A stretch of 64,000 nucleotides of DNA from the sequence record NC_061449.1; one strand, written 5' to 3'. Both the position numbers and the translations under genes were made by a program. Below, in pieces: positions 36,438-55,516 of this stretch (positions within the stretch are counted from its first letter, which is position 1; every line of letters starts with the position of its first letter). The notes under the pieces are model-generated. The model did not search any database and was not told the DNA's origin. It worked only from the letters and a program-made list of their open reading frames with translations.

Positions 36438-36495
36438 TACAGTCCACAGGTTTCTTTGACTGCTATTTACAGATACATGGAGTGTTTCACCGAAG

Positions 36496-36523
36496 AAAAA
36501 AGGGCAGCCGAAGCCACCCTTTT
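36496..36523 (-). terminator. Intrinsic terminator, GGGTGGC-TTCG-GCTGCCC family
   Basis: Identical stem-loop plus U6. Confidence 0.8.
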
Positions 36524-36526
36524 ATT

Positions 36527-38410
36527 TTACTTCTTAGCAGCAAGTCGTGCCCTACGCGCTTTAGCTTCGTCGCGCAGCTCGGCAACCTCTTCAAGAGCCT
36601 GAGCCATTGCGATCTCCAGTGCGCGATCACAAATAGCGTCAATGATTTGTTGAGGGTTCTCTTGTGTGTCGAGAAGCAGATACATAGGGTTCCCTAACTC
36701 AACTGCTTCAGGGTATAGTTCCTCACGCGCTTCCGCAATACACAACTCACCATCAATGTGGTACATGAGTCTAGGTATCTCGGTCTTCTTGAGCTTGTAC
36801 TTCTTATCCTCAAACATGGGGCGAAGTTTCGTGCGGAAGTCTTCGTGTGCGTCGATTGCAATGTATTTGTAACCGGCAAACACTTTCTTCGCAGCATTGA
36901 AATAGCGCTTGTCGATTATGGCCTTGTATCGTTCCATGCTCGCTTGATTAGCAGCAGGGCAAGCAGGAGCCATATTTGCCAACGAGCCGATAGCAGGTGC
37001 CAGAACGTATTCAGCATACAGACTAGAACTGTCCATATACTCCTCATCAACGTAACGGACCTGTACGCCACCAGTGTTAACGCGTGACGCATGGAACCAG
37101 AACATGCTTTCAGGATTCACTGAGTATTTAGCGAATGACCAAATCTGAGACAGCGCAGCAGGATAGGACCAACGCGTCAGATCATCCTTCCTCACACCGA
37201 ACAGATCAACTTCATCAAGGTTAGCGTCGAGGAAGCTCTTACGCTGTGCCTGTGGCAATCGGTCAATGAACATGTGCATTGCTCGCGTTTTACCTGATAG
37301 GTGTTGCCAAATTCTAGGCACGACAACATCATCAATACCGAACTTGTCAAACACAGTATCGAGGAACTGCCCGAACTCGTCATAACGCTTATCCCCAATA
37401 AGGGCAGCACTACAACGCACATAGAACTTAGGCTGTCCCCATTTCTCTCGCGCGAACATTGTAGCAATCTGAGGGTGACGGTCCAGAGCGTCAACAACAA
37501 TTTCCTCGTTGTTTGCAGCACGAGGCGCAGCAATAATGCCGCGAACAAACCCAGCAAGATCGCCTCGCATCAGCGGACTTTCAAGATCGTAGTTGAACTC
37601 AGTGCTACGCTGATCCGCATACAGCTTGCTACCCAGCTCATACATTCCCTTGCGCTCTGTGGCAGCGATGAAAGGATTAATGTGTTCGTCCAGCCAATCT
37701 TGCAGTACGTGAACGAAGGGCATCTTAGAATCTGGGTAGGCATACTCTACCAAATATAGCGCATTCACTTTCTCAGAGCCTACGAAACGTTCAGACGCTT
37801 TTGCTTTTGTTTGTTGGAAGTAAGGCTTAGCGAGGCAACGACCGATAGGCTTATTGATGTTTCTGTCCGAGGGATCAATCAGGTACGCGATCAACGTGCC
37901 ACCAGCAATGTCTTGTTTGACAAATCTCTTGTTCGAGCCTGTCTTCAAGTTCATGCAGCTCACCCACCCACGGTCTGTGGACATGCCTGCAATATCGTAC
38001 GGGTGCATTGAGATGCAGATAAGCTGACGGTTACGCGTCGCATTGACCATAGACTTACGGTTTGGGTCGGAGTCAAACATCTTCTTGAGTTCAGGATTCT
38101 TTGACAACACACGACCAATCTTAACGATACGCCCGTGCGTGTCTTTGCCTGTACCCGCAAGATAGTCAACGAGGACAATATCCTTTTCCATCAGAGCGTC
38201 AACGATTTGAATCGGAGGCTTGATATTCTGAGCGATATTCTTGATCACGTCGTCTGTCTTCGCGTCAATGTAGATGCGCATGGCCTTGTAGCCTTTCTTG
38301 CCGCTAATCTTTTCAAACAGATTCAGCAGTGTAATATTAGGCTTCCATCCTTTTCTGTACTTGCGGTACAGAGATGGAGGGAGAGCAGATAAACTGACTT
38401 GAATTTCCAT
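36527..38410 (-). CDS. Putative head-internal protein with MEIQVSLSA leader, 627 aa
   Basis: True start is probably the ATG at 38410 (MEIQVSLS; GAG RBS; CTAATTTTT ~28 nt upstream). Confidence 0.65.
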   Translation of the reverse strand: MEIQVSLSALPPSLYRKYRKGWKPNITLLNLFEKISGKKGYKAMRIYIDAKTDDVIKNIAQNIKPPIQIVDALMEKDIVLVDYLAGTGKDTHGRIVKIGRVLSKNPELKKMFDSDPNRKSMVNATRNRQLICISMHPYDIAGMSTDRGWVSCMNLKTGSNKRFVKQDIAGGTLIAYLIDPSDRNINKPIGRCLAKPYFQQTKAKASERFVGSEKVNALYLVEYAYPDSKMPFVHVLQDWLDEHINPFIAATERKGMYELGSKLYADQRSTEFNYDLESPLMRGDLAGFVRGIIAAPRAANNEEIVVDALDRHPQIATMFAREKWGQPKFYVRCSAALIGDKRYDEFGQFLDTVFDKFGIDDVVVPRIWQHLSGKTRAMHMFIDRLPQAQRKSFLDANLDEVDLFGVRKDDLTRWSYPAALSQIWSFAKYSVNPESMFWFHASRVNTGGVQVRYVDEEYMDSSSLYAEYVLAPAIGSLANMAPACPAANQASMERYKAIIDKRYFNAAKKVFAGYKYIAIDAHEDFRTKLRPMFEDKKYKLKKTEIPRLMYHIDGELCIAEAREELYPEAVELGNPMYLLLDTQENPQQIIDAICDRALEIAMAQALEEVAELRDEAKARRARLAAKK

Positions 38411-38437
38411 GATCGTTCTCTGTGTTCTGGTGATGAT

Positions 38438-38446
38438 AAAAATTAG
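38438..38446 (-). promoter_or_regulatory. CTAATTTTT motif (class 2, late promoter candidate)
   Basis: Recurs ~23-31 nt upstream of several virion/lysis gene starts. Confidence 0.55.
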
Positions 38447-38484
38447 CGTAGAAATGACAAACGCCCCGTTAGGAGCGTTATATG

Positions 38485-39375
38485 TCAAAGCATCAGCGTG
38501 TGCTTCCACAGCTTAGGCGTAAGTCGCATGTTGCGGCCCGGCTCAATTTCAGTCTTACTCGCATCAAAGTCATTGTCGTCCAACATGAACGTCTTGCCGT
38601 CTTTGATTTGTATCAGACGATCAATCGTTACACGTTCCGGTGCGTCAGTTGATTGCATACGAGGTGTTGTCTGCTGCAATGTTGCAGGGCCAGACCTGTG
38701 ATACAACGAAACTTGGTAGCCACTACCTCCACCAATAACAGGGAAGCCAATGCTATACAGATGATTGAAGAACTGCAAATCAGCGGCCTTAGTTCCTATT
38801 GGAGTCACTACGCCGCTACCATACCCAGTAGAAGCAGGCATAGTTGCTGAACCATAAAGAGTAGCCATGTTGTTGCTCAAGTTCAAACCGTAGCACGTCA
38901 CACCTACATTGAAAGCAGCAGTAATACCCGACTGATATACAGGCGGTAGATACGTGTTGAAAGTTCTACCGTCATACTTCTTAGGCACCACGACAACCGT
39001 ATGATATCCTGAATTGAATTGACTGTAGTTCAAGGTACTCAGAACATAGTTGTCGGTGTCCTGTTGGATCTGAGGATTGCCAGCTATTGTATATGCGTCA
39101 AACACTTGGCTAAGGGTATATGTGGGAGAAACAGACACAGGACCACGAAAAGGCAATGTGGTAAGATAGATGAACCTATCATCAGCCACACCGCTAATTG
39201 GATGACAAACGCCTTGTGTGTTGTAGCCAAGAAAAGATCTAGCGGTACGAATAGCGTCTGTAGTCGTACTCAAATCCATCTCATTTTTAGAGGAGTCAAA
39301 CAGAAAGCCCCACCTCAATGTGTCAGAACGAGCATAGAACTTTCTAAAGTCAGGTTGAGCGCAACAGTATTGCAT
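38485..39375 (-). CDS. 'MQY' paralog family member 1 (putative virion/fibre-associated)
   Basis: 'FLFD', 'ARSFLG...HPISG' at the N-terminus and 'LDDNDF...PG' at the C-terminus, shared with four other ORFs. Confidence 0.65.
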   Translation of the reverse strand: MQYCCAQPDFRKFYARSDTLRWGFLFDSSKNEMDLSTTTDAIRTARSFLGYNTQGVCHPISGVADDRFIYLTTLPFRGPVSVSPTYTLSQVFDAYTIAGNPQIQQDTDNYVLSTLNYSQFNSGYHTVVVVPKKYDGRTFNTYLPPVYQSGITAAFNVGVTCYGLNLSNNMATLYGSATMPASTGYGSGVVTPIGTKAADLQFFNHLYSIGFPVIGGGSGYQVSLYHRSGPATLQQTTPRMQSTDAPERVTIDRLIQIKDGKTFMLDDNDFDASKTEIEPGRNMRLTPKLWKHTLML

Positions 39376-39376
39376 A

Positions 39377-39895
39377 TCATGTCCTTATCAAGCGCTCGTT
39401 ATATCTCAGCCAGTCTTTCCACCAGTACTCAACCAACCTACCATTACGAAGCGCATAGTCGATGCAGTTCTGCGTTCCAGAAGGTGCACCACAACAAAGA
39501 GAAACAAGACGGTCAGTGTTGTCTACCATGAAGTGATTACGCTTATTCAAGGCAAACACTTCTTGACCATCCATATGCGCCCAGTCTTCTTTGGGAGTTA
39601 CAATATGGACTTCATGGCTTTTGTTCAACAGACCGTCAAGCTCAAACACACTGGACATCTTCCAGCGATTATTGAATCCGAGATAAGGGATACAAGACAC
39701 AACACGGTGTCCTTGCTCTATAGCCGCAGTGGCGATTGCCATGTCGAAGCCGAGAGCGCAACCGACCCAAATTTCAGTGTCGTTCTCGATACGCAGCAAC
39801 CTTCTATGAGCAAAAGTATAGAGGCGTCGTTTTGCCTCAGGGCCGAAGCCACCAAGATACTGAGGGCGATGACCAGTAAAGGATATCTTTTCCAT
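39377..39895 (-). CDS. SLOG-superfamily protein (YspA/DUF1273-like)
   Basis: 'ISFTGHRP', 'GCALGFDM', 'CIPY', 'RNHFMVD' and 'SGT.NCIDYA'. Confidence 0.85.
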   Translation of the reverse strand: MEKISFTGHRPQYLGGFGPEAKRRLYTFAHRRLLRIENDTEIWVGCALGFDMAIATAAIEQGHRVVSCIPYLGFNNRWKMSSVFELDGLLNKSHEVHIVTPKEDWAHMDGQEVFALNKRNHFMVDNTDRLVSLCCGAPSGTQNCIDYALRNGRLVEYWWKDWLRYNERLIRT

Positions 39896-39904
39896 TCACG
39901 TTAT

Positions 39905-40834
39905 TTACAGATCAATCGTCCTGTTAAGTTGCAGATTCAACTGTGGTCGTGAGCCAGGCACAACAGGAGCAAGTGCAGACCAATCACTCTTGTTCAGCTT
40001 CATTAGATTGTTATCATCTATGTATATCAGGCCCAAATCTATATCCACAGTCTCTGTAGGTAAATCAGCAATGTAGGTGCCGCTAGCATCTTTTAGATAA
40101 TGCAGGCCATCATTGCGTGACTCACGCGCAGACACATAACCTGTCTGTGCCGAACGGAAATCTGTTTCACCTAAGGCATTGATGTACTCTGCATCAGGAG
40201 TTATTGACACAGTGGCTGTAGGCGTCAGATAGTCTGAGGTGCGGCCCTCTTTGATTATCATAGGCGTCTGCGAGTTGTACGCATAGGCTAGCGTCATGCT
40301 ATTATAGGTTGGTGGTCGAATCAGATAAGAGTACAGTTGCAGGTAAGTCAGACTCACACCAACAGACAGCGAGTTATAGAAGTTCGCTTGCGGCCAAGAC
40401 ATAGTAACCGTTAGACCCCGCTGAGAGAAATCAGTAGGGAACGGGACCATCGCGTTGTAACCGTTATTGTATCTATAGGCGGACGTCACCACAGTACCAT
40501 CAGTCGCAGCATAGGACGTCCATGGGCCACGAGTCTTGTTTGCTGTAGTCTGGGTTGCTGCAATGAAGTGCTGGTAAAAGTATCTCGTGTCTTGGGCATT
40601 ACTGTAACCATAGAACAAGTAGCGCAGACACGTCAGGTAATAGTTACCATTGGCGTGCTTGCCTCGTATCGGATTAAGAAATGAATCTTGGCCCATGAAC
40701 GCTCTGGCGTTTCTTAGATTGAGTCTAAGCATTCCGGTAAGCGTACTGTTAGATACGAAGGCTTCTTTCGATGTATCAAAGAAAGCAATCTCATGATCTT
40801 TAAGTACCAGTGTTGGCTTCAAAATAAGTTGCAT
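39905..40834 (-). CDS. 'MQY' paralog family member 2
   Basis: 'AFFD', 'ARAFMG...LNPIRG...YYLTCLRY' and C-terminal 'DW....VVPGSRP'. Confidence 0.65.
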   Translation of the reverse strand: MQLILKPTLVLKDHEIAFFDTSKEAFVSNSTLTGMLRLNLRNARAFMGQDSFLNPIRGKHANGNYYLTCLRYLFYGYSNAQDTRYFYQHFIAATQTTANKTRGPWTSYAATDGTVVTSAYRYNNGYNAMVPFPTDFSQRGLTVTMSWPQANFYNSLSVGVSLTYLQLYSYLIRPPTYNSMTLAYAYNSQTPMIIKEGRTSDYLTPTATVSITPDAEYINALGETDFRSAQTGYVSARESRNDGLHYLKDASGTYIADLPTETVDIDLGLIYIDDNNLMKLNKSDWSALAPVVPGSRPQLNLQLNRTIDL

Positions 40835-40874
40835 AGCAATCTCCTAGTGGCACATCTTTGCGCACCGCCTACTG

Positions 40875-41240
40875 TTAGACCACTACTTCAAGTTCATGGT
40901 CACCAGAGTTCCAAACTAGTTCACGAATGTTGCGAGGCATGATGATGCAACCGCTTGATGCAGTACCCGGTGCTTTGATGCTATCGCCGTGCATCTGGAA
41001 TGCAGAGCGACCGAACATCACGTTCTCTTTTGCAGGAGTCAGGTCCATAGCATAAGGCCCAGTCTTCTGACTTGTGCGAGGTGCGTTGATTGTGTAACGG
41101 CCTTGAGGTAGAGGACCAGTGCCTACGATATTTTGAGAAGCAGGCTTGTTCTTATGCTCGCCTTTCCCTGCATAACCAGTAGCAACTACTTTATCGTTCT
41201 TGTCAGACAGGCGACCTGTTGACTGTTCATATTTCCACAT
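40875..41240 (-). CDS. Tlde1/DUF2778-family L,D-transpeptidase-like peptidoglycan enzyme
   Basis: 'GPLPQGRYTI' and 'GRSAFQMHGD......ASSGCII' (His...S-x-G-C catalytic motif). Confidence 0.85.
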   Translation of the reverse strand: MWKYEQSTGRLSDKNDKVVATGYAGKGEHKNKPASQNIVGTGPLPQGRYTINAPRTSQKTGPYAMDLTPAKENVMFGRSAFQMHGDSIKAPGTASSGCIIMPRNIRELVWNSGDHELEVVV

Positions 41241-41300
41241 AACACGTTTCCTTATAGAGTTGAATGGACCTTAAAGTCCCCAGGGTGAATCCACATTGGT

Positions 41301-42119
41301 TTATAGATCTAGCTGAGTCACATATTCTTCAGGAGTATTAAATGTGACTCTAGGACGATTGCCTGGAACTAAGTTTGAGGCAATCGTATAATCTCTATCT
41401 TTCGTATATCTGATACACGTATTACCGGCGGTCATTAGTCCAATAGCCCAGTCCAGATTAACAACATCGTTTGTACCAGGAGTCACGTCCGTATACACAA
41501 GACCAGTTCCGTAGAAATAGTCTATGTAGAAGTGAACGGACTGAACATATGTACGCAGAGGAAACTGAATGAATTTAGTTTCCTTTGTCAGACCCTGATA
41601 TATGTAGATGTTGTTTGTACCTGCAGAGGTAGACGTAGGTTGAACTATCTCGGAAGTCGAGTCAGACGCATAGTAGTAAACACCGAAGCGATTATCAGCA
41701 CCTGCTTTAAACGTCAGGTTAGGCATACGGAATCCCGTTACGCCTTTCGGATTCAAGATTATGTTGTTCAACGTATAAGGAGTATCTGCGTTCCCATCTC
41801 CATCAATACCTACAGAAGGGAACGTTGTTGCAGTACCGTCAGACGTATACAAACTCTTTGACGCAATAGTTCTGGCTGCTGCCAACAAAGATGTAACTCT
41901 CGCAGTACCTCCTAGTGTGTATCTCAGGAACGTATGATAGTACCTAGCGCCATTTTGACCACGTATGGGATTCAGTTGTAGGCCGCTACCCAAACACGAA
42001 CGAGCGTTAACAATAACATCCTCAATGGGTTGTGCCAGAGAGATGTTATCCTTGTTGTCGTAGAACAAAACTGATGGGAGTTTATTGGGATCGACAACAA
42101 CCTTAGACAGATACTGCAC
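41301..42119 (-). CDS. 'MQY' paralog family member 3
   Basis: 'MQYL', 'VLFYD', 'ARSCLG..LQLNPIRG....YY.TFLRY' and 'DY..ASNLVPGNRP'. Confidence 0.65.
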   Translation of the reverse strand: MQYLSKVVVDPNKLPSVLFYDNKDNISLAQPIEDVIVNARSCLGSGLQLNPIRGQNGARYYHTFLRYTLGGTARVTSLLAAARTIASKSLYTSDGTATTFPSVGIDGDGNADTPYTLNNIILNPKGVTGFRMPNLTFKAGADNRFGVYYYASDSTSEIVQPTSTSAGTNNIYIYQGLTKETKFIQFPLRTYVQSVHFYIDYFYGTGLVYTDVTPGTNDVVNLDWAIGLMTAGNTCIRYTKDRDYTIASNLVPGNRPRVTFNTPEEYVTQLDL

Positions 42120-42184
42120 AGTAGGCTCCTTTATCAGGTAAGTACAAAAGGGCCTACACCTCTCGATGCAAGCCCTTGATAGTG

Positions 42185-42322
42185 TCAGACTATAATTGTC
42201 TTGATCACGTTACGGTTCTTCTTTGGGTCGAACCATACTTCTTCAATAATCTTGCCCATGCCGAAGTTGATCATCTGCACAGTGCGTCGTGAGACTACGA
42301 GCAGACGTTTAGACTGGAACAT
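42185..42322 (-). CDS. Small hypothetical protein, 45 aa (MFQSKRLLVV...), not in the ORF track
   Basis: AGGAG RBS just after the stop of 42325..42834; open to TGA at 42185; followed by a hairpin and U tract (42146-42177). Confidence 0.55.
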   Translation of the reverse strand: MFQSKRLLVVSRRTVQMINFGMGKIIEEVWFDPKKNRNVIKTIIV

Positions 42323-42324
42323 GA

Positions 42325-42834
42325 TTACTCCTTAATCATTTTAACGCGTGTGTGGTCGAAGATACCGAAGGTAGGAACATCGTGGTGTTCGCCTTCATTA
42401 CCTTTGATTGAGTCGTACCCAGCAAGTTTGAGTATCTTGCTGATCTCGGTATACTCGTCCCACCACATATAGACTCGCTTGTACTGCGAGGCAGGTATGA
42501 GGTTATTCAGCGCGTCTAACCTTTTAACGAGAGTCATCGCCTCATCTTTGCCAACCAGATGCAACTGGAAGGCTTCCATGATAAGTTGCTTCACTCGTCT
42601 ATAAATCTCAGCGAACTTTACTTCCGTCCACAGAGAACGGAACTTCAAGGTAGCATAGCGACCTGGGTCCGCATGAAACTTGTAGAGGCGCCCACCTTCC
42701 GCATACAGTTCAGCATACGCACGATCTGGAGTTACCCAAGTCATGTGTTGCTTCTTCGCATGTTCATCAGACCAGTCTTCTGCAAGACCACGATAGTAGA
42801 TGGTAGGCGCACTCAGACTGACGAAGATTTCCAC
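42325..42834 (-). CDS. Putative ADP-ribosyltransferase-fold protein with MEIFVSLSA leader
   Basis: 'YYRG', 'WVTPD..YA..YA..G.LY.F' and C-terminal 'LKLAGYDSI......V..F.IFD...VK' match the pattern of phage ART-like domains. Confidence 0.6.
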   Translation of the reverse strand: MEIFVSLSAPTIYYRGLAEDWSDEHAKKQHMTWVTPDRAYAELYAEGGRLYKFHADPGRYATLKFRSLWTEVKFAEIYRRVKQLIMEAFQLHLVGKDEAMTLVKRLDALNNLIPASQYKRVYMWWDEYTEISKILKLAGYDSIKGNEGEHHDVPTFGIFDHTRVKMIKE

Positions 42835-42837
42835 AGA

Positions 42838-43794
42838 TTAATCTTTGTCGGTATCGTGGATGTCGGCTTCACCCAGAGAACGTTTGAAAGAGTCAGGAGT
42901 CAGACCATACTTGGTCATATCTGATTTCTTAACAACGATCTTCTTACCGTTTTTATTGGTGAATACGCCTTTGCCATTTTTAACGGAACCAGACCAGCCA
43001 GCTTTGGCGGTAATAGCTTTACCGTCGTTGAGTTCTTTCAGCATTCGCTTAGCCATGCGAGTGTCTTTATCCCACTGCTTGGATTGGGCTTGCAGAGACT
43101 GGCGCGCTGCATCATTTTTCTGACCGATGGTTTTGTGTTGCGTGGTTTTTGGTGTAGCTTTCTTGCCGAAGAGTTTAGCTTTCTCGCGCCCAATCTCAGA
43201 GGCAGTCACTTCTTTCTTCTTCGCACCCGGTTTGACTTTACGATCACTCGGAGAACTGGCGCGGCCTATTTCATCGAACTTCGCCTCCTTCATGAACATA
43301 GGCTTGAAGGTGCCACGTTTGCCAGTAACACCAAACTCAGTCAGCTTGGTAGCACGGATTGCTTTCAGCGCTTTATCTGCGCCAACGCCGGTTTTGATAT
43401 CAGCAGCAGACAGAGGCAGATTCAGACCACCTAGACCATGGGCTTTAGCAACCTTGTTTGCTTCACGCAGGGCAGCCTTAGCAGTTTTGATCTCAGAGGT
43501 AGCTTTAGCTTTCTCGGTCTTACGGGTGGCCATCAGCTTGGTGCGCTTGTCGCCGCGAGGCAGTTGACGAGCTTTGGTTGCAGCGGTGTTCGATTTGATG
43601 CTTGCATTGATACCAGCGACAGCCGCAGCCTTAGCTTTCTTCAAGTGACCAACAACAGCCTGCAATTCACTTTTCTTTGCAGAGTTGATTACAAGCACAG
43701 GCGTCTTGCCTGACTTAGCCATTTTGTACGCTGGTTTCTTCGCAGCAGACTCAGAGACAAGTGAATCTGCAATGTTAATGCGGATGAGAGCCAT
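42838..43794 (-). CDS. Lys/Ala-rich putative head-internal DNA-binding protein
   Basis: Very basic; 'VSES|AAKK' leader; N-terminal half paralogous to 43820..44395. Confidence 0.6.
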   Translation of the reverse strand: MALIRINIADSLVSESAAKKPAYKMAKSGKTPVLVINSAKKSELQAVVGHLKKAKAAAVAGINASIKSNTAATKARQLPRGDKRTKLMATRKTEKAKATSEIKTAKAALREANKVAKAHGLGGLNLPLSAADIKTGVGADKALKAIRATKLTEFGVTGKRGTFKPMFMKEAKFDEIGRASSPSDRKVKPGAKKKEVTASEIGREKAKLFGKKATPKTTQHKTIGQKNDAARQSLQAQSKQWDKDTRMAKRMLKELNDGKAITAKAGWSGSVKNGKGVFTNKNGKKIVVKKSDMTKYGLTPDSFKRSLGEADIHDTDKD

Positions 43795-43819
43795 GTGATT
43801 TCCTTAATTGAATATTGGA

Positions 43820-44395
43820 TCAAAGTTTAGGCTTGGCGCCTTTCTTGCGATCAGCTTCTGCGTCACGCTTCTTATCTATTACAGATGTAGCGCCAAACTT
43901 AGGCTTCAACGCAGCAGTCTGGGTGCCGTGAGTCTTAACGCGAAAGCGGTCGGTCTTGACGTTTTTGATCTTGCCTTCGGTATACTTCCAATCACCGACA
44001 GTGATATGGCTTACCAGAATAGGCATTTCAAGGCCAGACAGGCCTGCTTTCTTCAAACTGGCAGACGCATCACGCAATAACTGTTTTGCCTCAGCACCAG
44101 TAGATTTGGCAGTAACCGTCAGCGTTTTAATCTGACCTTTAAGCGTTGTCTTAGCTGCTTCGGTTTTTGCGCTACGCAGTTTCAATTTCGCAGCGTCAAG
44201 CATCTTACTCGCTTTCGCACACTCAAGACCTAGCTTTTTAGCCTTAGTCGTGTCCGAAAGAACTTTGGTTACAGTAGCTTTATGCTTCGAGTCGATAGCC
44301 AGGTTATAACTACCACCACCGACGTAGACAGCGTAGCCAGTTGTCTTCTTCGCGGCCGATGCAGATAACACCAGACCTATTGTAATCTTAGCCAT
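43820..44395 (-). CDS. Lys/Ala-rich putative head-internal protein, paralog of 42838..43794
   Basis: 'LSAS|AAKK' leader; 'A...L..A....K..GL.GL..P......I..G' shared. Confidence 0.6.
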   Translation of the reverse strand: MAKITIGLVLSASAAKKTTGYAVYVGGGSYNLAIDSKHKATVTKVLSDTTKAKKLGLECAKASKMLDAAKLKLRSAKTEAAKTTLKGQIKTLTVTAKSTGAEAKQLLRDASASLKKAGLSGLEMPILVSHITVGDWKYTEGKIKNVKTDRFRVKTHGTQTAALKPKFGATSVIDKKRDAEADRKKGAKPKL

Positions 44396-44404
44396 GATGT
44401 TTCC

Positions 44405-45010
44405 TCATACCAGCGCACGGCCGGGAAGATCGAAGTTTTTACCAGCCGAGTAATCACCCAGCGCTTGGTACAGGGAGTTGCGTAGCATCTGCTCAATGAT
44501 ATCTGAGTTGTGTGCCGAAGCGTCTTTGAAAGAGACCTCGATCGACTCAGTTCTCGGATTCACGACAGCGTAACGCAGCGGGCAGATCTGCTGCGCTTCA
44601 CACCATGCGTCTACTTTGATTTGCAGATCAGGTGTAATTGGTATGCGGAAGTCTGCGAGTTGGAACACAACGCTCTGGATAGGAGGAGGCGACGAATGCG
44701 ACATGAACTTACCATTCACATTCAAATGCTCCATAGCGTTTGCCGCTTCATAGATCGTTTGATAACCGTCACCTACTGTGGTGAGGCCACTGAGCTTGAA
44801 GCTATGCGTTGTCAAGCCTTTGCGGATCAGCTTGGCGATATTGACTTCATAATCACCAGAGTCATCACGCATGAAAGTGACGAACGCGTAGAAGGCGAAA
44901 CCATCTTCTTCGCGTAAAAGTTTGTGATCTAATACACGAAAGCCCACGACACTTTGCAGTGCCTGGGCTGTGATTTGCGTCGCCTTAGATAGGGAGACGT
45001 AGATTTCCAT
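44405..45010 (-). CDS. Hypothetical protein with MEIYVSLSK leader
   Basis: Shared leader; coupled to the upstream ORF (TAATG). Confidence 0.6.
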   Translation of the reverse strand: MEIYVSLSKATQITAQALQSVVGFRVLDHKLLREEDGFAFYAFVTFMRDDSGDYEVNIAKLIRKGLTTHSFKLSGLTTVGDGYQTIYEAANAMEHLNVNGKFMSHSSPPPIQSVVFQLADFRIPITPDLQIKVDAWCEAQQICPLRYAVVNPRTESIEVSFKDASAHNSDIIEQMLRNSLYQALGDYSAGKNFDLPGRALV

Positions 45011-45345
45011 TAACGCAGACGGGCGAGAGCTTTCTTAGCAGCAGCCAGAGTAGGTTGGATATCGCCTTCGTCGTCGAACTCACCTTCGAAACGAATGTCG
45101 AGACCAGTCACGTTGAAACCTTCGTCTTCATCTTTGGTGATGATGCCGAAACGAGCGGTGTCGCCGGTAGCGCTGATGAAACGCAGATCCAGAATGTCGT
45201 TCGGACCTTCTAAGTCAGACGGCATACCGTCGTCAATGATCTCGAACAGCGCTTTCTTGTCCATGCCCTTGAAGAAGGCGGACAGAGCAGCGGCAGCAGA
45301 TACAGACTTAACAGCGTCATTCAGATTCAGTTTGATAAGAGACAT
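45010..45345 (-). CDS. Acidic small protein with 'KSVS|AAAA' leader
   Basis: GGAG RBS; strong codon bias. Confidence 0.6.
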   Translation of the reverse strand: MSLIKLNLNDAVKSVSAAAALSAFFKGMDKKALFEIIDDGMPSDLEGPNDILDLRFISATGDTARFGIITKDEDEGFNVTGLDIRFEGEFDDEGDIQPTLAAAKKALARLR

Positions 45346-45347
45346 GA

Positions 45348-45920
45348 TCAGTTTACTCCAACTTGTTTAGTGATTGTGATAACACGCTGGTACCAACCAT
45401 AAATGTTATCTTCCTGAGTTTCGTCTGCCTTAGCGATGTTTTTCAACTTCGCAATACGACAACCGTTGTAGGCATAAGCCAATACTTTGATATCGCGTAC
45501 TTTGCAGTACGCATCCAGCGCAGCGATAGTCTTCGGACCAATGTTCGCAGCAGGTGCAAAGTCTGGATAGAGTCTGCCTCTGCTGTTTAAGATGTTCAAC
45601 TGGTCTTGCAGCTCCGCGATTGCTGCTGGTGGCCCTGAGTTAACTGCGTAGTCAAATACCCACAGCGCCAGTTCCTGGCTGTACTTCGCAAGCTGATCGC
45701 ATTTGCAGAAGTCCCAGAAGTTAGCACTGTAGATCGCATACGCAATCTCATACGGCAGGTCTTGCATAGCGCCTTTGTAGCCATAAGCGCGAGCATTCTT
45801 TTCCGTGACACCCCAACGTGTAGGACCGCCACGGTCAGCAGAGCGGTTAGTGTATTTCTCGCCACCTTCACGATCAATAACTTCCGCTATTGCTTTCTTT
45901 CGAAACGTCAAAGCGTCCAT
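45348..45920 (-). CDS. Glycoside hydrolase family 108 lysozyme with C-terminal PG-binding domain (endolysin-like)
   Basis: 'EGG.KY.N...DRGGPT.WGVT', 'FD.AVNSG' and 'IGPKT.AA', 'GW..R'. Confidence 0.9.
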   Translation of the reverse strand: MDALTFRKKAIAEVIDREGGEKYTNRSADRGGPTRWGVTEKNARAYGYKGAMQDLPYEIAYAIYSANFWDFCKCDQLAKYSQELALWVFDYAVNSGPPAAIAELQDQLNILNSRGRLYPDFAPAANIGPKTIAALDAYCKVRDIKVLAYAYNGCRIAKLKNIAKADETQEDNIYGWYQRVITITKQVGVN

Positions 45921-45956
45921 AGATATAGCCCTCTTTTAGACAGACTAAAATTAGCG

Positions 45957-46802
45957 TTAGATGAATAACTTTGACTGTTTGAATCGCATCTTAGGACGAG
46001 TACCTGGGTCAGACGTGACTGAATCAAAGTCATTCACATCGAGCATACAGAATGCACGAAGCACTGAGCTATAGAAGAATGCTTTATTCAGGATAGGCGC
46101 TTCATCTGCACCTGTTTGGTTTTGAGCGAAGACGCCTGTGTACGACGCACCCGCAGAAACTCCAGGCGTACCATTAGCTCCAGTAGCATAGAAAGATGTA
46201 GGCAGTCCCATCATCGTACATGCGTAGGCCGGAGTTTCGTTCGCCGTGACAGTTGTATACGTACACACACCAGTTGCACCACCAGCACTACAAGTACCAG
46301 TTGCAGTCACACCAGTATCTCTAACATATCGACTGACAATGAATCCTGTTGCAAACTGACCATAAGGGCAGTTACCGTCGTGCAGGTTCATTGGCGGCAT
46401 CTGTATAGGCTGACCAGCAATCATCCCTGTGGTCAGAAATACTGTCGTGTTGCCTGATGTGTTCAGAAACGAATAGGACTGCGAAGCCGCGATACTACAG
46501 TTACCACTGAGTCCTTTTGCTGGGTCCTGTTGAACAATGTCGTAAGAGTTATCGAGTGTAATTGAACTTGGCTGCTGATACTTCAAGCAGGTGAAGTGGT
46601 ACTTGTTTGACTTGCGTCCTCGAATAGGATTCAAGTAACCATTAAAGCCCAAAACAGCGCGAGCTTTACGAGCAAGGACGTTTGCCTTGGTCATATCTGT
46701 CAGCGTGGAGAAGTCAGAGTCTTCTCGGCTGTCGTATAGGAATACGTTTGGGTTCGTGGGTGATGGACCGCCCAATCCGAAAAAAGATGATATGTATTGC
46801 AT
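45957..46802 (-). CDS. 'MQY' paralog family member 4
   Basis: Start MQYISS at 46802; 'VFLYD', 'ARAVLG..GYLNPIRG..SNKY..TCLKY' and 'LDVNDF....DPGTRP'. Confidence 0.65.
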   Translation of the reverse strand: MQYISSFFGLGGPSPTNPNVFLYDSREDSDFSTLTDMTKANVLARKARAVLGFNGYLNPIRGRKSNKYHFTCLKYQQPSSITLDNSYDIVQQDPAKGLSGNCSIAASQSYSFLNTSGNTTVFLTTGMIAGQPIQMPPMNLHDGNCPYGQFATGFIVSRYVRDTGVTATGTCSAGGATGVCTYTTVTANETPAYACTMMGLPTSFYATGANGTPGVSAGASYTGVFAQNQTGADEAPILNKAFFYSSVLRAFCMLDVNDFDSVTSDPGTRPKMRFKQSKLFI

Positions 46803-46830
46803 AGGATGTACCCTATAAGGTTCGACGTGT

Positions 46831-47715
46831 TTATATGCGCAGGTTTGCTGCTTTAAATCTAAAAGCAGGACGTGTGCCCGGAATAAGATTTGGAGCAACG
46901 TCATAGTCGTTCTGATCTAACATCACCAGAGTGTTAAAGGCTTTCCAATAGAAAAGACCGAACGTCAAATTGACTGTTTCGTCCGCAGCTTCTCTAGGAC
47001 CCCAGAAGATACCATCACTCCTGTATGGCAGGTACATGTCAGCGTAGTTCCCTCTGTCTGTAGCTACTGACAAGGCTTTCATTGCCATTGCGTATCGAAA
47101 GTTGACAGTCAATGTCGTATACACATCGGCAGGTGCAATGCTTGGATAACCGTAACCTGTAACGAACTGATCAGAGTTTGTCGCAGGTCGATCGACAAAC
47201 GCACCGTTGAATGACCTGTAGTGAATCGTACTTGGAAATCTTCCCCATTGACTACTTAGATTGTCTGTAGCGGCAGCGGCACATTTAGGGAAGTGCAGTT
47301 TCACATCAAACGGACAGTTGACGACTATCGTACCTTTAGTGATCGTATAGTCAGGGAAGTATGGTGCTTTGGTTGCGTCGTAACTTCGATAGTCAGTGGA
47401 CACAGCATCAGATACATGCAGAGAAAACCCAACAGTGTTTTCTTGAGTTATAGGTTCGTATGTTGCTGGTGCCCAATCTTTATCTGCCGCATACTTGGCA
47501 AACGTAGGGAAGTATTTGTTTCCGTACTGGCCAGCAACAGGATTAAGCTGACTACCTATTCCGAGAAACGCTCGCGCTTTGTGTGCGTTGGCTTTCGCAA
47601 ACGTCAGGTCACGCATTTGAGCTTTAGTCAATCCATCCTTGTCATCAAACAGAAGAACGTTAGGCATTGTCGTCACAGGACTGGCAAGGCCAAAAAGGGC
47701 GGCTATGTATTGCAT
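46831..47715 (-). CDS. 'MQY' paralog family member 5
   Basis: 'MQYIAALFGL', 'VLLFD', 'ARAFLG...QLNPVAG..GNKY' and 'LDQNDY...NLIPGTRP'. Confidence 0.65.
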   Translation of the reverse strand: MQYIAALFGLASPVTTMPNVLLFDDKDGLTKAQMRDLTFAKANAHKARAFLGIGSQLNPVAGQYGNKYFPTFAKYAADKDWAPATYEPITQENTVGFSLHVSDAVSTDYRSYDATKAPYFPDYTITKGTIVVNCPFDVKLHFPKCAAAATDNLSSQWGRFPSTIHYRSFNGAFVDRPATNSDQFVTGYGYPSIAPADVYTTLTVNFRYAMAMKALSVATDRGNYADMYLPYRSDGIFWGPREAADETVNLTFGLFYWKAFNTLVMLDQNDYDVAPNLIPGTRPAFRFKAANLRI

Positions 47716-47781
47716 GAGTTCTACCTCAAGTGAAGATCGAAAGGTACTACGCGTTGAGATAAAATTATCTGTAGGAACGAC

Positions 47782-47801
47782 AAAAGGGGCCGAAGCCCCT
47801 T
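47782..47801 (-). terminator. Intrinsic terminator
   Basis: AGGGGC-TTCG-GCCCCT-TTT. Confidence 0.75.
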
Positions 47802-48141
47802 AGAATGTCCAACGTGTTACCCAAGCGATCAGGCCTGAGAGAATACCTATGTGCGACAGGTAACCGAACTGCAATACATGGCCTCGGACATAATGTTTCA
47901 GTCCACCAGCGTATGCACCGTCATACATGGCAGCGATTACCATGAAGGACATGACGTAGGTGAACACATGCCACCGAGTCATCTCCATAGCTTCGTTGCA
48001 GAACACTATCAGAAATAATGCAACGGCCATGATGTACACAGTGCGCTTCATCTCAGTCAGGTTGATACCAAGCACGACAGGTCGCATAGCGAACGCCGCG
48101 AGTATCGACACCAACATCAACGCCTGATAGTCGGCTGACAT
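47800..48141 (-). CDS. Small multi-pass membrane protein (holin candidate)
   Basis: 113 aa with 3-4 hydrophobic segments. Confidence 0.55.
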   Translation of the reverse strand: MSADYQALMLVSILAAFAMRPVVLGINLTEMKRTVYIMAVALFLIVFCNEAMEMTRWHVFTYVMSFMVIAAMYDGAYAGGLKHYVRGHVLQFGYLSHIGILSGLIAWVTRWTF

Positions 48142-48434
48142 GCTTCTTCCACCTCTTCCGTGCTTATCGGTTTCTTGCGACGCATATCAAGTGCGAGTTG
48201 TGCCTTGCGTCCGATGCGAGCCATAGACTCCAGGTCTTCATCAGAGTAGGCGCTCATGCTATCTTCAACAACACGGAGTTCTCGGATGTGGCTTGGTGTT
48301 AGTTCGTAATCACCAGCCGAACCAAACATCGCAGCAGACAGGCCTGGGATATTTACGTTAGCAATGCTTGGCACGTCATCTCTGACTTTCACAAGCAGCT
48401 TACCGCTTTTACTTACATCGTGTGGAATTGCCAT
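48117..48434 (-). CDS. Hypothetical protein
   Basis: Probable start MAIPHD at 48434, immediately after the previous stop. Confidence 0.5.
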   Translation of the reverse strand: MAIPHDVSKSGKLLVKVRDDVPSIANVNIPGLSAAMFGSAGDYELTPSHIRELRVVEDSMSAYSDEDLESMARIGRKAQLALDMRRKKPISTEEVEEACQPTIRR

Positions 48435-48435
48435 A

Positions 48436-49149
48436 CTACACACCTTGATTAGCGAGGTAGGTATCGGTGATGTTTGAGGTCTTCTCCACGTTACCGCGAA
48501 TGTAACCAATCTCAAACACCTGCACGTTATGTTTGACAACTGCTTCACCAACTGTCTCACATGCGCCGCTATTCAAATCAAGGAAAGCCTGACACAGACG
48601 TTCAGCAACAGGCTTGGCCAGAATCTTCATCAGCGTGTGCTTTTGAATTGCAGTCAGCTTAATAGGCAGCGCGTCGATCTCACGCTCGATGTTCTTACGA
48701 CCACCATTGTAGATCCAACGACAGATGGTTGCAGTCAAAGGCTTCTGGTGAGTCTTCGAAGGCAATGTGTAGATGTAGGTCATCAGTCGATAGAACAGGC
48801 TGCCGTCGATTGCACGTTTCTTTAGGTCATCGAGATACTGACCAACAGGAACGAGCTTGGCTTTCTGTGGCACCATCTGATCGAGTTTGAGATCAACATC
48901 AAGCCCATAACGACGCAACGTTTCAGAATGTCCGAATACATATACAATATGATCGGGCATATCACGAATCGCTACTGCATTGCGTGAATACTCTTTCGTA
49001 CCTACAACAAACAGGTACTTGCGATATTTCTTTGAAGGGTCTATAGTACCACCAGGAGGAACGAATGTCACTCGGTCGGCTAGCCCCTTCTTTCTGAGCC
49101 AGCCCAGAACTTGCTCTGGGCTTTGCTGCGTTACTGCGATTACAGGCAT
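48436..49149 (-). CDS. Hypothetical protein, 237 aa
   Basis: GGAG RBS; operon packing. Confidence 0.6.
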   Translation of the reverse strand: MPVIAVTQQSPEQVLGWLRKKGLADRVTFVPPGGTIDPSKKYRKYLFVVGTKEYSRNAVAIRDMPDHIVYVFGHSETLRRYGLDVDLKLDQMVPQKAKLVPVGQYLDDLKKRAIDGSLFYRLMTYIYTLPSKTHQKPLTATICRWIYNGGRKNIEREIDALPIKLTAIQKHTLMKILAKPVAERLCQAFLDLNSGACETVGEAVVKHNVQVFEIGYIRGNVEKTSNITDTYLANQGV

Positions 49150-49151
49150 CG

Positions 49152-49472
49152 TTACTCCACCGTGTTCAGAGCTTGGGCAGTGTACTCACGCAAAGTACGT
49201 TCGATGTTTGTTGCCAACGTAGGATGACAGATCAGCTGGTGGTCTTTCATGTACACACGCAGAGACGGTCGCAGCACCTTACGCACTTGTGGGTAGAGGC
49301 CGAAGATTTTATGCAGAGGAGTCTTATAATAAAACTCCTCATGTTCCTCCATGCAGTTGACGTTGGCGACAACTTCATATTTGGCAAAGATGCCTGGGTT
49401 ACGATTGATATACGCAGGGTCAATAGGAACACTACCCTTCTCATGCTTAGTATCAAGCTGACCGAAGATCAT
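49152..49472 (-). CDS. Hypothetical protein
   Basis: Coupled to the SbcC stop (TAATG). Confidence 0.6.
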   Translation of the reverse strand: MIFGQLDTKHEKGSVPIDPAYINRNPGIFAKYEVVANVNCMEEHEEFYYKTPLHKIFGLYPQVRKVLRPSLRVYMKDHQLICHPTLATNIERTLREYTAQALNTVE

Positions 49473-51808
49473 TACATCACCTTACGTGTGAGTGCGGACC
49501 TGCCTTGCTTCTTAGTCACAGTCCACTGATTGTTAGAGAAATGCTCAACATCATTCGGAGTTATCCAGTAGATGTTCGGGATAATCTGTTTGAGTATCGG
49601 CAAGAAGTTATTGATGATATGCTCGCTCACGGCAGGACTGCAACTGTTATCAGGCTCGTCGAGAATGATAAAGTTCGTGCGTCGGTTAGCAGGGATGAAC
49701 GGCATGATCGCTACAGCAAACAACAGGCGGAAGCAGTTTGTCTCTGCACCACTCATGATTGCAATGTCGGTTGTCTTCTTAGAAGACACACGCGTAACGG
49801 TTGCACCAACACCTTGCTTGGTCGTGAACAAATCGAAACGCATAGGCTCAGGGAATACGAGAGCGCTGTATTCATTCAGCTTCGCTTCAATCTGTTTGAT
49901 ACGGCCTTCAACAGCTTTCAGTTTCAGAGCGTTGTTGCTATATGCCTTGTACAAGACTTCGAACACCTTGCGCTTATCAATCAGCGGTTGCAGGTCTGCG
50001 AGTTTACCACGAAGCTCTTTGAGAGTTTCCTCGTAGTGCTCATGCTCCTGAATACGCATCTGGATGTTCTGCGCTTTGCGTTCTTTCTTCTCGATATCGG
50101 TAATCAGCTTTTCAACTTCGGCGCTTACCTTTTTATATCGGCCATCGAGAATGTAGAATGGATCTTCCGGCTCACCAACAGCTTTGAGTGCAGCACGAAT
50201 GTCTTTCAGAATCTCAAGGTCCTTGATGCGGTTCTTGATTGTCTTACGAGCTTTCTTAGGCTGCTTCACTGCTTTTGGTTTCTTGAGCGCATCACGTCTG
50301 GCCACCAGCTTCTCATACTTCTTCGCTGTCTCGAATTGTTCTTCGATATCGTCCAGAGCAGCACCGACAGCTTTGAGTTTACGCTCAAGGTCTTTGCGCT
50401 TATGCTTAGGCTTCTTCACTTTGTTGTCTTGCAACTCGGTGAGTTCTGCATTCAGCTTGTGATATTCGATTGCTTCAATACACTCGTCAATGATTGCCTG
50501 AGCTTTCGTTGCAGCGCGAGCCATAGCTTTCAGGTTAACACCCTGACCGCACGTAGGACAAGAGTTGCCGTCGTGATCGTGTTCTTCAAACGCGCGATAC
50601 GCCTGAACTATTGCTTTGGCTTCTGCTCGGGAATCCTGTGCCTCTTCCTGAGTTCGTTTAGGAGCTTTGAGCTTAGACAGCTTTTTACTGAGCTTGTCCA
50701 CTGCTTCTCGCCAGTCGTCGTACTCTTCCTGCTGTTCATCGACTTTCTCCAATAACGCTTCGAGGCTTTCTTCCTCTTTAACTAAGCGTCCATGTTCTTT
50801 GCGTAGCTTTTTGTTGTCGAGATCAGCAACATCACCAAGCGCTTTGATTTTCTTTTTGACTTCGGACAGTTCAGACTGATACTCGTCCAGAGCTTCGACA
50901 AAGGCATCGTAGCGATCATGTTCTTGCAACAGACCGCGCAGATTGTTCAGTTCACCTTTAAGGTCGTCTGTCTCAATTCCCAACGTGTCGAGTTGGTGCT
51001 TGAGCTTTTCGTACTTCTTCGCAGTAGAACGTTGAGTACCGAGTTCAATCAATTGCTCGGACAACTCATTACGCCGCGCTTTCATCTTGTCAGAATGCTT
51101 GATGATTGCTTTCAGCGTATTCTTTTCTTCTGCGTGAATAGACAGGGCGTTCTGCTTACGTTGTGTAACGTCAAGCATATCAGCAAGACCCTTCGATTCT
51201 GTCTCGGCGTCTTTGGCCAAGTCCAGTTTCTTCTTCAACGCCTGACGAATGTTGTCGAAGATATCTAGGTTGAATAACGAAGTAAGGTACGTCAAGCGTT
51301 CAGCAGGTGTAGCACGTTGGAACGGATGCTGAATCTGCGACTGGATATACGCGTAACTGTAGAACTCGTCACGCGTTAAAGGCCAGTGCTTTGTCACCCA
51401 AGAACGAGCAACATCCTGACGGTCTACTTTCTGGTTCTCACCGTTATAGAATACCTGATACTTTGATTTGGTTTGAACGATACGAACTTCACCACCAAGA
51501 GGTGACTGCCACGCTAACTCGATTGAGCTGTCTTTACCGAGCATGTTCCCCTTGTCTTTCTTTTTCATTGCAAGAGGATCAGCTTCATACAGCAGCGTAG
51601 GAATTGCACCGAACAACAGGCTTTTGCCTACACCGTTCGTGTTGTCTTTAACGTTCGGACTGTCGAGGTTCTTACCGCAAATGGTTGCGAAGCCTTCACT
51701 GTCCAGTGTAGCAATATCAAGTTCTTCGTAAACACCAACGTCACGCAGATGGATTTCTTTCAATCCTATACCGTGATGCTGTTTTTGCTTTTGCTTCGCT
51801 TTGCCCAT
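49472..51808 (-). CDS. sbcC: SbcC/Rad50 (T4 gp46-like) SMC-type ATPase
   Basis: Walker A 'G.N......NGVGKS', Q-loop, coiled coils, Zn-hook 'CPTCGQ', signature 'MSGAE' and Walker B 'IILDEP'. Confidence 0.92.
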   Translation of the reverse strand: MGKAKQKQKQHHGIGLKEIHLRDVGVYEELDIATLDSEGFATICGKNLDSPNVKDNTNGVGKSLLFGAIPTLLYEADPLAMKKKDKGNMLGKDSSIELAWQSPLGGEVRIVQTKSKYQVFYNGENQKVDRQDVARSWVTKHWPLTRDEFYSYAYIQSQIQHPFQRATPAERLTYLTSLFNLDIFDNIRQALKKKLDLAKDAETESKGLADMLDVTQRKQNALSIHAEEKNTLKAIIKHSDKMKARRNELSEQLIELGTQRSTAKKYEKLKHQLDTLGIETDDLKGELNNLRGLLQEHDRYDAFVEALDEYQSELSEVKKKIKALGDVADLDNKKLRKEHGRLVKEEESLEALLEKVDEQQEEYDDWREAVDKLSKKLSKLKAPKRTQEEAQDSRAEAKAIVQAYRAFEEHDHDGNSCPTCGQGVNLKAMARAATKAQAIIDECIEAIEYHKLNAELTELQDNKVKKPKHKRKDLERKLKAVGAALDDIEEQFETAKKYEKLVARRDALKKPKAVKQPKKARKTIKNRIKDLEILKDIRAALKAVGEPEDPFYILDGRYKKVSAEVEKLITDIEKKERKAQNIQMRIQEHEHYEETLKELRGKLADLQPLIDKRKVFEVLYKAYSNNALKLKAVEGRIKQIEAKLNEYSALVFPEPMRFDLFTTKQGVGATVTRVSSKKTTDIAIMSGAETNCFRLLFAVAIMPFIPANRRTNFIILDEPDNSCSPAVSEHIINNFLPILKQIIPNIYWITPNDVEHFSNNQWTVTKKQGRSALTRKVM

Positions 51809-52008
51809 TAGACGTACTCGATTGTTTCTTCCTGGATAAGACCTTTACCGTGAATCTGTTCGAATACTTCGATTTCATCGGAGGTGTACGGCTCGGCAGA
51901 TTCTGCGATCACATCATACGCATATGATTCGTCGCGGGTATCGCTTGCGATTGGTTTTAAAACACGCCACATAGGCAGAGCGATCGGTTCACGTTGGATA
52001 GCAGGCAT
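51808..52008 (-). CDS. Hypothetical protein, 66 aa
   Basis: Coupled on both sides (TAATG). Confidence 0.55.
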   Translation of the reverse strand: MPAIQREPIALPMWRVLKPIASDTRDESYAYDVIAESAEPYTSDEIEVFEQIHGKGLIQEETIEYV

Positions 52009-52220
52009 TAGTGGAATACTCCCTGACGCTCAACCCACAGGTCAGCAGCACGATACACCTTGCGCAGCTCATTCAGTTTTTCTTCTGGCACAGGAGTAGC
52101 AGACGAGAAGATGCACTGTGGTGTCTTCTCCTCTTTGCCTGTTACTGGATTGATATCGGTGTCGTGACGCATTACGTTCCAGCGGCCATTCGAGCCACGG
52201 ATATTGATAGTCTGGTTCAT
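52008..52220 (-). CDS. Hypothetical protein, 70 aa
   Basis: Downstream of a CTGTAAATA motif; coupled to the next ORF. Confidence 0.55.
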   Translation of the reverse strand: MNQTINIRGSNGRWNVMRHDTDINPVTGKEEKTPQCIFSSATPVPEEKLNELRKVYRAADLWVERQGVFH

Positions 52221-52317
52221 GGTTAAAGCCCAAGTATTGGTATTAATGATACTCGTTATTTACAGTTTTGATCGGTATAGACAAAAAGAAGGGCCACCAG
52301 CAATGGCAGCCCAATCT

Positions 52318-52767: not shown

Positions 52768-52783
52768 GAATACCTCAGAAATG

Positions 52784-52811
52784 AAAAAAGGGCAGCCGAA
52801 GCCACCCTTTT
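52784..52811 (-). terminator. Intrinsic terminator, GGGTGGC-TTCG-GCTGCCC family
   Basis: Identical stem-loop plus U6. Confidence 0.8.
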
Positions 52812-52898
52812 GTAGATGGCGCGCTATGCACCCGACTGTTAAGTCTACTACAGTTATTTTACCTCGCAGTAGTCAGCGAGGAGATTGGGATCACCTCC

Positions 52899-53435: not shown

Positions 53436-53502
53436 TATTGTCTTCCAGAGCTGTATGATTGATTGTAGTTAAAATTACTAACGAGTCAGACATTTCTGAA
53501 AT

Positions 53503-53534
53503 AAAAATGGGCAGCTATTTAGCCACCCATTTTT
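53503..53534 (-). terminator. Intrinsic terminator (loop variant of the family)
   Basis: ATGGGTGGCT-AAAT-AGCTGCCCAT-TTTT. Confidence 0.75.
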
Positions 53535-53545
53535 CACTTATTTAA

Positions 53546-55508: not shown

Positions 55509-55516
55509 AGTCTGTA

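Follow-up and report, generated by a model that had tools for sequence, protein, structure and literature searches.

What purpose might be served by five related hypothetical proteins encoded in a variable genomic island of a jumbo phage, outside its tail module? The question is raised by a stretch of 64,000 nucleotides (the window in what follows; its base 1 is base 124,001 of record NC_061449.1) from the 263,916-bp genome of Erwinia phage pEa_SNUABM_17, hereafter S17, of the genus Alexandravirus. A preliminary description of the window had picked out five open reading frames (ORFs) as a family of paralogs with conserved ends and hypervariable cores, and had proposed that their paired termini form a common base displaying swappable beta-rich heads. 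We find that the five genes do form a family with conserved ends and divergent middles, that each type appears to be old and held by selection, and that the repertoire changes by whole genes. The 10 kb surrounding these genes match that genome at 100% identity. Our tentative suggestion is that they encode small jelly-roll binding modules, forming a repertoire specific to the lineage and most likely carried on the virion surface. All five ORFs are present on the minus strand, encode proteins of 272-309 amino acids (aa) annotated as hypothetical, and are labelled A to E in coordinate order:

38485..39375, minus strand, paralog A (gp186, 296 aa), the most divergent member
39905..40834, minus strand, paralog B (gp188, 309 aa), whose protein begins MQL
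41301..42119, minus strand, paralog C (gp190, 272 aa), with a GTG start
45957..46802, minus strand, paralog D (gp198, 281 aa), directly upstream of an endolysin gene
46831..47715, minus strand, paralog E (gp199, 294 aa), in tandem with D

The true start of D is the conserved MQY methionine at 46802 (281 aa) and not the upstream ATG at 46904 (315 aa). Searches with blastp between the paralogs gave E-values of 7e-25 for D-E, 5e-12 for C-E over the full length and 4e-6 for B-E, with A weak in pairwise comparison. A profile hidden Markov model (HMM) from which each protein's own orthogroup had been left out recovered A at 58.7 bits, B at 108, C at 154, D at 164 and E at 142. Judged from their sequences, A to E are true paralogs, related far beyond chance, and the family of five originally proposed holds. 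The whole genome has exactly five clear members, along with a distant sixth, gp053 (346 aa; record 35771-36811, outside the window), which scores 24 bits over HMM positions 1-278 and carries the DETV...DF...VPG motif near its C-terminus.

The family belongs to no described family. Pfam holds no family for any of A to E, a PDB sequence profile search gave no match at E-values up to 10, and a word-based protein search returned close orthologs only. PHROG 35205, which carries no function, matches D (E 1e-13) and E (1e-12) over its first ~100 positions, corresponding to the N-terminal block; A, B and C do not match it.

Conservation per alignment column is concentrated in residues 1-78 and 231-281 of D, in agreement with the shared N- and C-terminal blocks reported earlier, and the invariant or near-invariant positions are R48, G62, E234, P266 and G267. 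With D as the reference, the protein divides as follows:

46569..46802, minus strand, conserved N-terminal block of D, aa 1-78 (MQY..FD..AR..LG..LNPIRG..Y.T.L.Y)
46113..46568, minus strand, divergent core of D, aa 79-230, the predicted body of a jelly-roll sandwich
45957..46112, minus strand, conserved C-terminal block of D, aa 231-281 plus the stop codon (DE.V.L...LD.NDFD....PGTRP)

The preliminary description had found the cores unalignable by eye, and had named good alignment of the cores as an outcome that would tell against its proposal. When the cores alone of eight orthogroups were compared with hhalign, probabilities were at most 5%, equal to those of reversed controls, the exception being G-C at 69%. 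The reported richness of the core in Thr, Ser, Gly, Tyr and Asn was also confirmed: Tyr is at 2.5 times and Thr at twice the proteome level, Gly, Ser, Pro and Asn are moderately raised, and Lys, Glu and Arg are depleted. An anatomy of conserved ends and a type-specific middle is thus present in the conservation profile, in the core-only alignments and in the predicted shared fold, and we infer that the conserved part acts as an anchor.

That fold was examined in an AlphaFold2 model of D built from a 47-sequence alignment. The model is a single body with a predicted local distance difference test score (pLDDT) of 88.6 and a predicted template modelling score (pTM) of 0.87; strands run throughout residues 118-254 (core strands 118-228), and the N-terminal block consists of two short helices plus strands. 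The AlphaFold2 model of A reached pLDDT 77.4 and pTM 0.80, and when the DSSP strings of A and D were threaded on the alignment, 73% of aligned residues agreed, the order of the core strands included. Against an independently built BFVD model of a D-type ortholog, the A model gave template modelling (TM) scores of 0.62-0.65, with a root-mean-square deviation of 4.6 over 289 columns at 19% identity, and the D model gave TM 0.61-0.73 against models of other types. Because the conserved ends make up less than half of the residues, such TM values need a partial superposition of the cores. An ESM Atlas model of D was poor (pLDDT 0.28) and yielded no useful structural neighbours. Each of A to E is thus predicted to be one compact, stand-alone beta-sandwich of the jelly-roll type, of about 30 kDa, and the models predict that fold and strand order are kept between types despite the divergence of core sequence.

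Residues ~64-245, which bear out the beta-rich middle that had been proposed, align weakly with jelly-roll sandwiches in the PDB (Foldseek, VIA). The resemblances are to carbohydrate-binding module (CBM) families CBM22, CBM6 and CBM35, TNF-family ligands, the receptor-binding domain of the PM2 spike P1, lambda/T1 tail-tip domains and birnavirus VP2. The best VIA scores were Z 5.3 for CBM22, 4.9 for PM2 P1 and 4.7 for CD40L, with Z 4.1-5.3 over 107-133 residues for the CBM-like sandwich fold, and a Z under 8 in this tool may mean only a common arrangement; we therefore claim a fold class and not a specific family. Foldseek matched CBM22 at E 4e-4, with TM by target of 0.16-0.34. The structural alignments to CBM, TNF-like and phage receptor-binding domains span D residues 64-231, and the first ~60 and last ~40 residues, which belong to the conserved part, fall outside the jelly-roll alignments. 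A match to the tail fibre of Agrobacterium phage 7-7-1 (Z 4.8 over 92 residues) was dropped as lying in the noise range.

The proposal that the cores are hypervariable is not borne out. Between close phages, cores of the same orthogroup are 90-99% identical. The ratio of nonsynonymous to synonymous substitution rates (dN/dS) in the core, where dS is unsaturated, is 0.06 for D between S17 and AD1, 0.08 for E between S17 and S1, and 0.14 for A between S17 and S32, and D cores of different orthologs give 0.06-0.11. Core identity also tracks that of the ends within orthogroups, with N-terminal block, core and C-terminal block at 100%, 91-99% and 88-96%, at 85%, 65% and 73%, or at 78%, 71% and 79%. 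Across all pairs the relation is monotonic: core identity drops about twice as fast as that of the ends and is no better than random where the ends share less than ~40%, so that cassette swapping is not needed to account for the divergence. In a few comparisons the ends are 50-60% identical and the cores just 15-30%, among them a D-type protein against P0015 and the A of S17 against the A of Alexandra; these may leave room for rare core replacement or for bursts of change after duplication.

The mechanisms that might have generated rapid diversity were also looked for. No reverse transcriptase (PF00078) was found in the whole 264-kb genome in a search whose controls gave hits, and in 38400-47800 repeats are short and weak (the best between paralogs being 24 nt at 71-79% identity), with no template/variable repeat pair and no recombination tracts between paralogs. 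A diversity-generating retroelement is accordingly rejected, and the earlier statement that reverse transcriptase, template repeat and invertase are all missing is upheld by the genome and repeat searches. The low dN/dS, together with the lack of DNA repeats between copies and of a reverse transcriptase, argues that the paralogs are old and that each type is held by selection; on this sequence evidence, the paralogs are ancient and every type is under purifying selection. The idea of swappable heads fares poorly, given the monotonic relation of core to ends, the shared predicted fold and the lack of recombination tracts.

The family has a narrow distribution. A profile search of 1.84 billion cluster representatives yielded 39 clusters, 37 of them with proteins of 267-309 aa and two short (207 and 119 aa); most match the family profile over almost their whole length, and none forms part of a longer protein. 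Ten clusters that were inspected contain phage records or long contigs, and all their named members come from ~260-kb Erwinia phages. With tblastn, 50,697 phage records gave matches only in Erwinia and Dickeya phages and in one Yersinia jumbo phage, and the 66 distinct family sequences fall into ~29 clusters at 38% identity. These searches show the family to be restricted to 'hairy' jumbo myoviruses with genomes of ~260 kb that infect Erwinia, Dickeya and Yersinia, in the genera Alexandravirus and Sasquatchvirus and their relatives. Two published relatives in the clade, AD1 and Y3, have been called 'hairy Myoviridae' (PMC6143709). D is 94% identical to its ortholog in AD1 and 98% to that in SNUABM_33, and E orthologs are 74-91% identical in Alexandra and SNUABM_1. 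PaBG is without the family, and its published proteome is therefore irrelevant here. The AD1 paper contains no proteomics, and a literature search turned up none on virions of fHe-Yen9-02. A manure-metagenome contig of ~33 kb, ~96% identical to the window, keeps the D-E tandem. Close relatives of the 42000-47900 region were seen in manure, compost and wastewater metagenomes, and contigs from two wastewater metatranscriptome libraries cover parts of D and E, which is no proof of transcription.

Close relatives carry different sets of types in the island:

S17 (pEa_SNUABM_17): A, B, C, D, E
SNUABM_1: H, F, x1, D, E
Alexandra: A, F, G, E
SNUABM_32: A, F, x2, E
SNUABM_16: x5, G, E
SNUABM_2: F, G, E
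AD1 and SNUABM_33: H, D

Phage Y3 has gp189 and gp190 in the island and gp096 elsewhere. Since the set of 2-5 types varies from phage to phage, the repertoire changes through duplication, loss and exchange of whole genes, and not by targeted mutagenesis or core swapping. Diversification by duplication and recombination, as first suggested, is supported in part: the repertoire differences fit duplication and gene-level gain and loss, and recombination tracts were not found.

One possible tie of these proteins to the phage particle is their resemblance to proteins encoded on the tail-fibre side of the genome. When 207 proteins were ranked by their content of Tyr, Thr, Ser, Gly and Asn minus charged residues, C was 7th, D 10th, B 14th and A 17th (E was left out by the crude gene caller used), and the remaining top ranks were mostly annotated tail-fibre genes and the adjoining gp076-090 block. 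Y3 gp096 is a full member of the family (5e-44), located between the orthologs of gp090 and gp092, where it adjoins a 'putative virion protein' and tail-fibre genes; a metagenomic relative has a like arrangement. The tandem pair gp088/gp089 (PHROG 21316) are distant homologs of the family (hhalign probability 94%, E 1e-7) and can be aligned with it over the whole length, both conserved blocks included. In agreement with this, Foldseek matched proteins of ~350 aa from JA13, Yoloswag and Alexandra at 1e-5 to 1e-8.

The gp076-gp090 block (record 47260-59350, outside the window) is itself unusual. It alternates genes for proteins of ~300-360 aa with genes for ~150-200 aa, includes the internal paralog pairs gp078/080, gp079/081 and gp088/089, encodes the most Tyr/Thr/Ser/Gly/Asn-rich and charge-poor proteins of the genome, and adjoins virion and tail-fibre genes. 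We regard gp076-gp090 as candidate 'hair' genes.

The island in which A to E are found separates two genes, sbcD-like and sbcC-like, that are usually adjacent. Here they are parted by ~13 kb whose content varies among close relatives, and only about half of 38000-48000 aligns, at ~80% identity, to related phages. The island endolysin is a GH108 enzyme with a peptidoglycan-binding domain, and a gene for a multi-pass membrane protein is also present. Three strong terminator-like hairpins divide the region into two units, [E, D, endolysin ... gp191] and [C, Tlde1, B, YpsA, A]. These hairpins and two neighbouring genes, of families typical of conflict systems, are:

39377-39895, YpsA/SLOG-family gene, just below the Pfam cut-off and annotated 'GTP-binding domain'
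40875-41240, Tlde1/YkuD-like gene with an L,D-transpeptidase fold (65 bits)
47784..47801, minus strand, terminator-like (intrinsic) hairpin upstream of E, opening the unit from E and D through the endolysin to gp191
42148..42177, minus strand, terminator-like hairpin between gp191 and C, separating both units
38460..38479, minus strand, terminator-like hairpin just past the stop of A, ending the unit C-Tlde1-B-YpsA-A

As D and E share a terminator-bounded unit with the endolysin, co-transcription of the three genes is probable, which suggests late expression. Sigma-70-like promoters are not enriched across the region, and two other upstream motifs are. The window has 11 copies of CTGTAAAYA where 1 would be expected, every one on the coding strand and most of them just upstream of replication-type genes (sbcD-like, clamp loader, second polymerase); the genome has 35. 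The CTGTAAATA motif at 39902-39910 includes the stop codon of B, and YpsA and A follow it. A second motif, CTA[AC]GCTAATTTT, is found ahead of gp182, gp183, gp185, the endolysin gene and gp249, with a variant, CTACAGATAATTTT, preceding E, and may represent a second promoter class. The sites are:

10671, 16514, 19940, 21160, 29097, 36464, 39902, 52257, 54873, 55218 and 61011, minus strand, CTGTAAAYA
34447, 35318, 38447, 45955 and 47769, minus strand, and record 209151, plus strand, CTA[AC]GCTAATTTT-type

We abandoned an attempt to date the genes by promoter class: CTGTAAAYA and CTA[AC]GCTAATTTT are truly enriched, yet they do not time expression. Three genes interleaved with the paralogs begin MEIxVSLS, and the N-termini of three others, gp193, gp194 and gp196 (MALIRINIADSLVSESAAKK, MAKITIGLVLSASAAKK and MSLIKLNLNDAVKSVSAAAA), resemble loose variants of this start:

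38387-38410, minus strand, MEIQVSLS start of gp185 (annotated start 38410)
42811-42834, minus strand, MEIFVSLS start of gp192
44987-45010, minus strand, MEIYVSLS start of gp195
42838-43794, minus strand, gp193
43820-44395, minus strand, gp194
45010-45345, minus strand, gp196

The gp193 and gp194 proteins are very basic and rich in Lys and Ala, with no family match, and may be internal head or DNA-binding proteins.

How, then, might A to E work? The placement of these small jelly-roll modules on the virion surface, which we favour with some hesitation, draws on composition, weak fold resemblance, the genomic position of relatives and the unit shared with the endolysin. In such a virion protein, the conserved frame (the first ~78 and last ~50 residues) would do the same job in every member, most likely to dock onto one shared partner or to self-assemble, and the type-specific surface of the sandwich would bind a type-specific ligand. 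The proteins could sit at the tips or along the sides of tail fibres or 'hairs', as modules recognising glycans on the host surface, and members would act like separately encoded adhesins or exchangeable receptor-binding heads. A bolder proposal, which we think distinctly unlikely, is that the family and its distant ~350-aa relatives in the gp076-090 block are the sensor tips of tail 'hairs', with an N/C clamp that would plug interchangeable jelly-roll sensors onto a common fibre. If so, each phage would present 2-5 or more glycan readers in combination, and the set would tune adsorption to different capsule or lipopolysaccharide (LPS) types. A role in decorating the capsid was considered unlikely because copy number varies and the genes are not in the head module.

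Several observations weigh against a place on the virion surface. A to E are not in the tail or fibre module, and only their relatives (Y3 gp096 and gp088/089) adjoin fibre genes; the five themselves occupy the plastic island between the sbcD-like (35361-36437) and sbcC-like (49472-51808) genes, where their neighbours are the YpsA/SLOG gene, the Tlde1/YkuD-like gene and the endolysin. AD1, whose host is Dickeya, and SNUABM_33, whose host is Erwinia, share the D+H set, with D copies 94% and 98% identical to that of S17, which a simple host-range role for D does not predict. The A and D models are not independent, since they share one alignment holding all paralogs. In addition, all PDB matches are at Z 5.3 or below, within the noise range of the tool, and the fold class is generic.

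The main rival, which we consider rather unlikely, takes this location at face value: the proteins would be non-virion accessory factors, intracellular binders for host takeover, defence inhibition or decoy, in which each type targets a different host or competitor protein and the conserved frame is simply the stable part of the fold. The hyperplastic sbcD/sbcC-like island with its conflict-type YpsA/SLOG and Tlde1-like neighbours fits such a role, as does the variation of copy number and type among close relatives, a pattern typical of genes for counter-defence. The gene directly upstream of A is YpsA, and the sole upstream motif is the CTGTAAATA site of a class found in the window mostly ahead of replication-type genes; moreover, A to E lack both a signal peptide and a capsid-targeting leader and are not fused to fibre proteins. 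However, cytoplasmic proteins are not usually so poor in Lys, Glu and Arg and so rich in Tyr, Thr, Ser and Gly, a composition that in this genome is found mainly in proteins of the tail-fibre side, where true and distant relatives of the family also sit, and sigma-70-like promoters are not enriched in the region.

The endolysin and the Tlde1/YkuD-like gene invite another explanation, improbable in our estimation, that the proteins are envelope or lysis helpers: glycan-binding sandwiches working with the GH108 endolysin (next to D and E) and the Tlde1/YkuD-like enzyme (next to B and C), whose ligands might be peptidoglycan, LPS or amylovoran, during lysis or entry. In Alexandraviruses one member always lies between the endolysin and the multi-pass membrane protein, B and C flank the Tlde1-like gene, and the fold resembles carbohydrate-binding modules. 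Yet the proteins have no export signal and the endolysin has a peptidoglycan-binding domain of its own; the Y3 members are not beside the endolysin, those in its island being between sbcD-like and Tlde1-like genes, and 2-5 types would be hard to explain by a single wall substrate. Very improbable, finally, is a true cassette system, in which recombination would act through the ends and move unrelated cores from gene to gene and from phage to phage. The lack of profile-level similarity between cores of different types would be expected from it, and so would the few pairs with ends at 50-60% and cores at 15-30%, but the ends of the paralogs have no DNA identity beyond 24 nt at 71-79%, the end-core relation is monotonic, fold and strand order are predicted to be the same through the core, and lengths are uniform at 267-309 aa.

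New here are the definition and boundaries of the family, a confident fold model, an ortholog-group map of nine phages, and the tie to a paralog block beside the tail-fibre genes. To our knowledge, no genes have been assigned to the hairs of the 'hairy' jumbo myoviruses, and little is known, so far as we are aware, of what determines host range in biocontrol phages of Erwinia and Dickeya; the result is a short, testable list of proteins that may be binding modules. In addition, the family offers a clean natural example in which the ends remain recognisable and the middle has lost detectable sequence signal with its predicted fold kept. If the proteins are not in virions, they would instead be a variable accessory set of the plastic island between the sbcD- and sbcC-like genes.

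Several known systems resemble the family in part. CBM22, CBM6 and CBM35, the TNF/C1q-like proteins and PM2 P1 have a similar beta-sandwich topology over residues ~64-245, with scores in the range of a common arrangement, and the CBM families differ in that A to E have no Pfam or PDB sequence match. Among separately encoded adhesins, gp38 of T2- and S16-type phages is a stand-alone tail-fibre tip protein of ~260 aa in which a conserved part serves for attachment and variable segments contact the receptor. We found no sequence or fold match between gp38 and the family, and gp38 is single-copy, encoded beside gene 37, and carries its variable loops between glycine-rich motifs in a polyglycine-II sandwich and not a jelly roll. 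The receptor-binding proteins (RBPs) of lactococcal phages p2, TP901-1 and Tuc2009 are alike in that a conserved anchoring part carries a jelly-roll head whose surface is specific to its type, the head type differing among relatives, and the Tuc2009 head is among the weak structural matches (Z 3.5). Those RBPs are single trimeric baseplate proteins with an N-terminal anchor and a C-terminal head, encoded in the tail module, whereas the MQY family has both termini conserved around a variable middle and consists of stand-alone proteins in 2-5 copies outside the tail module. The tailspike proteins TSP1-4 of CBA120 and the arsenals of Rak2/CBB-like 'hairy' phages are large fibres or beta-helix enzymes with conserved N-terminal adaptors, and the MQY proteins are small and globular, with no enzymatic signature; what the family would share with these arsenals is a set of several paralogous binding proteins whose repertoire differs among relatives.

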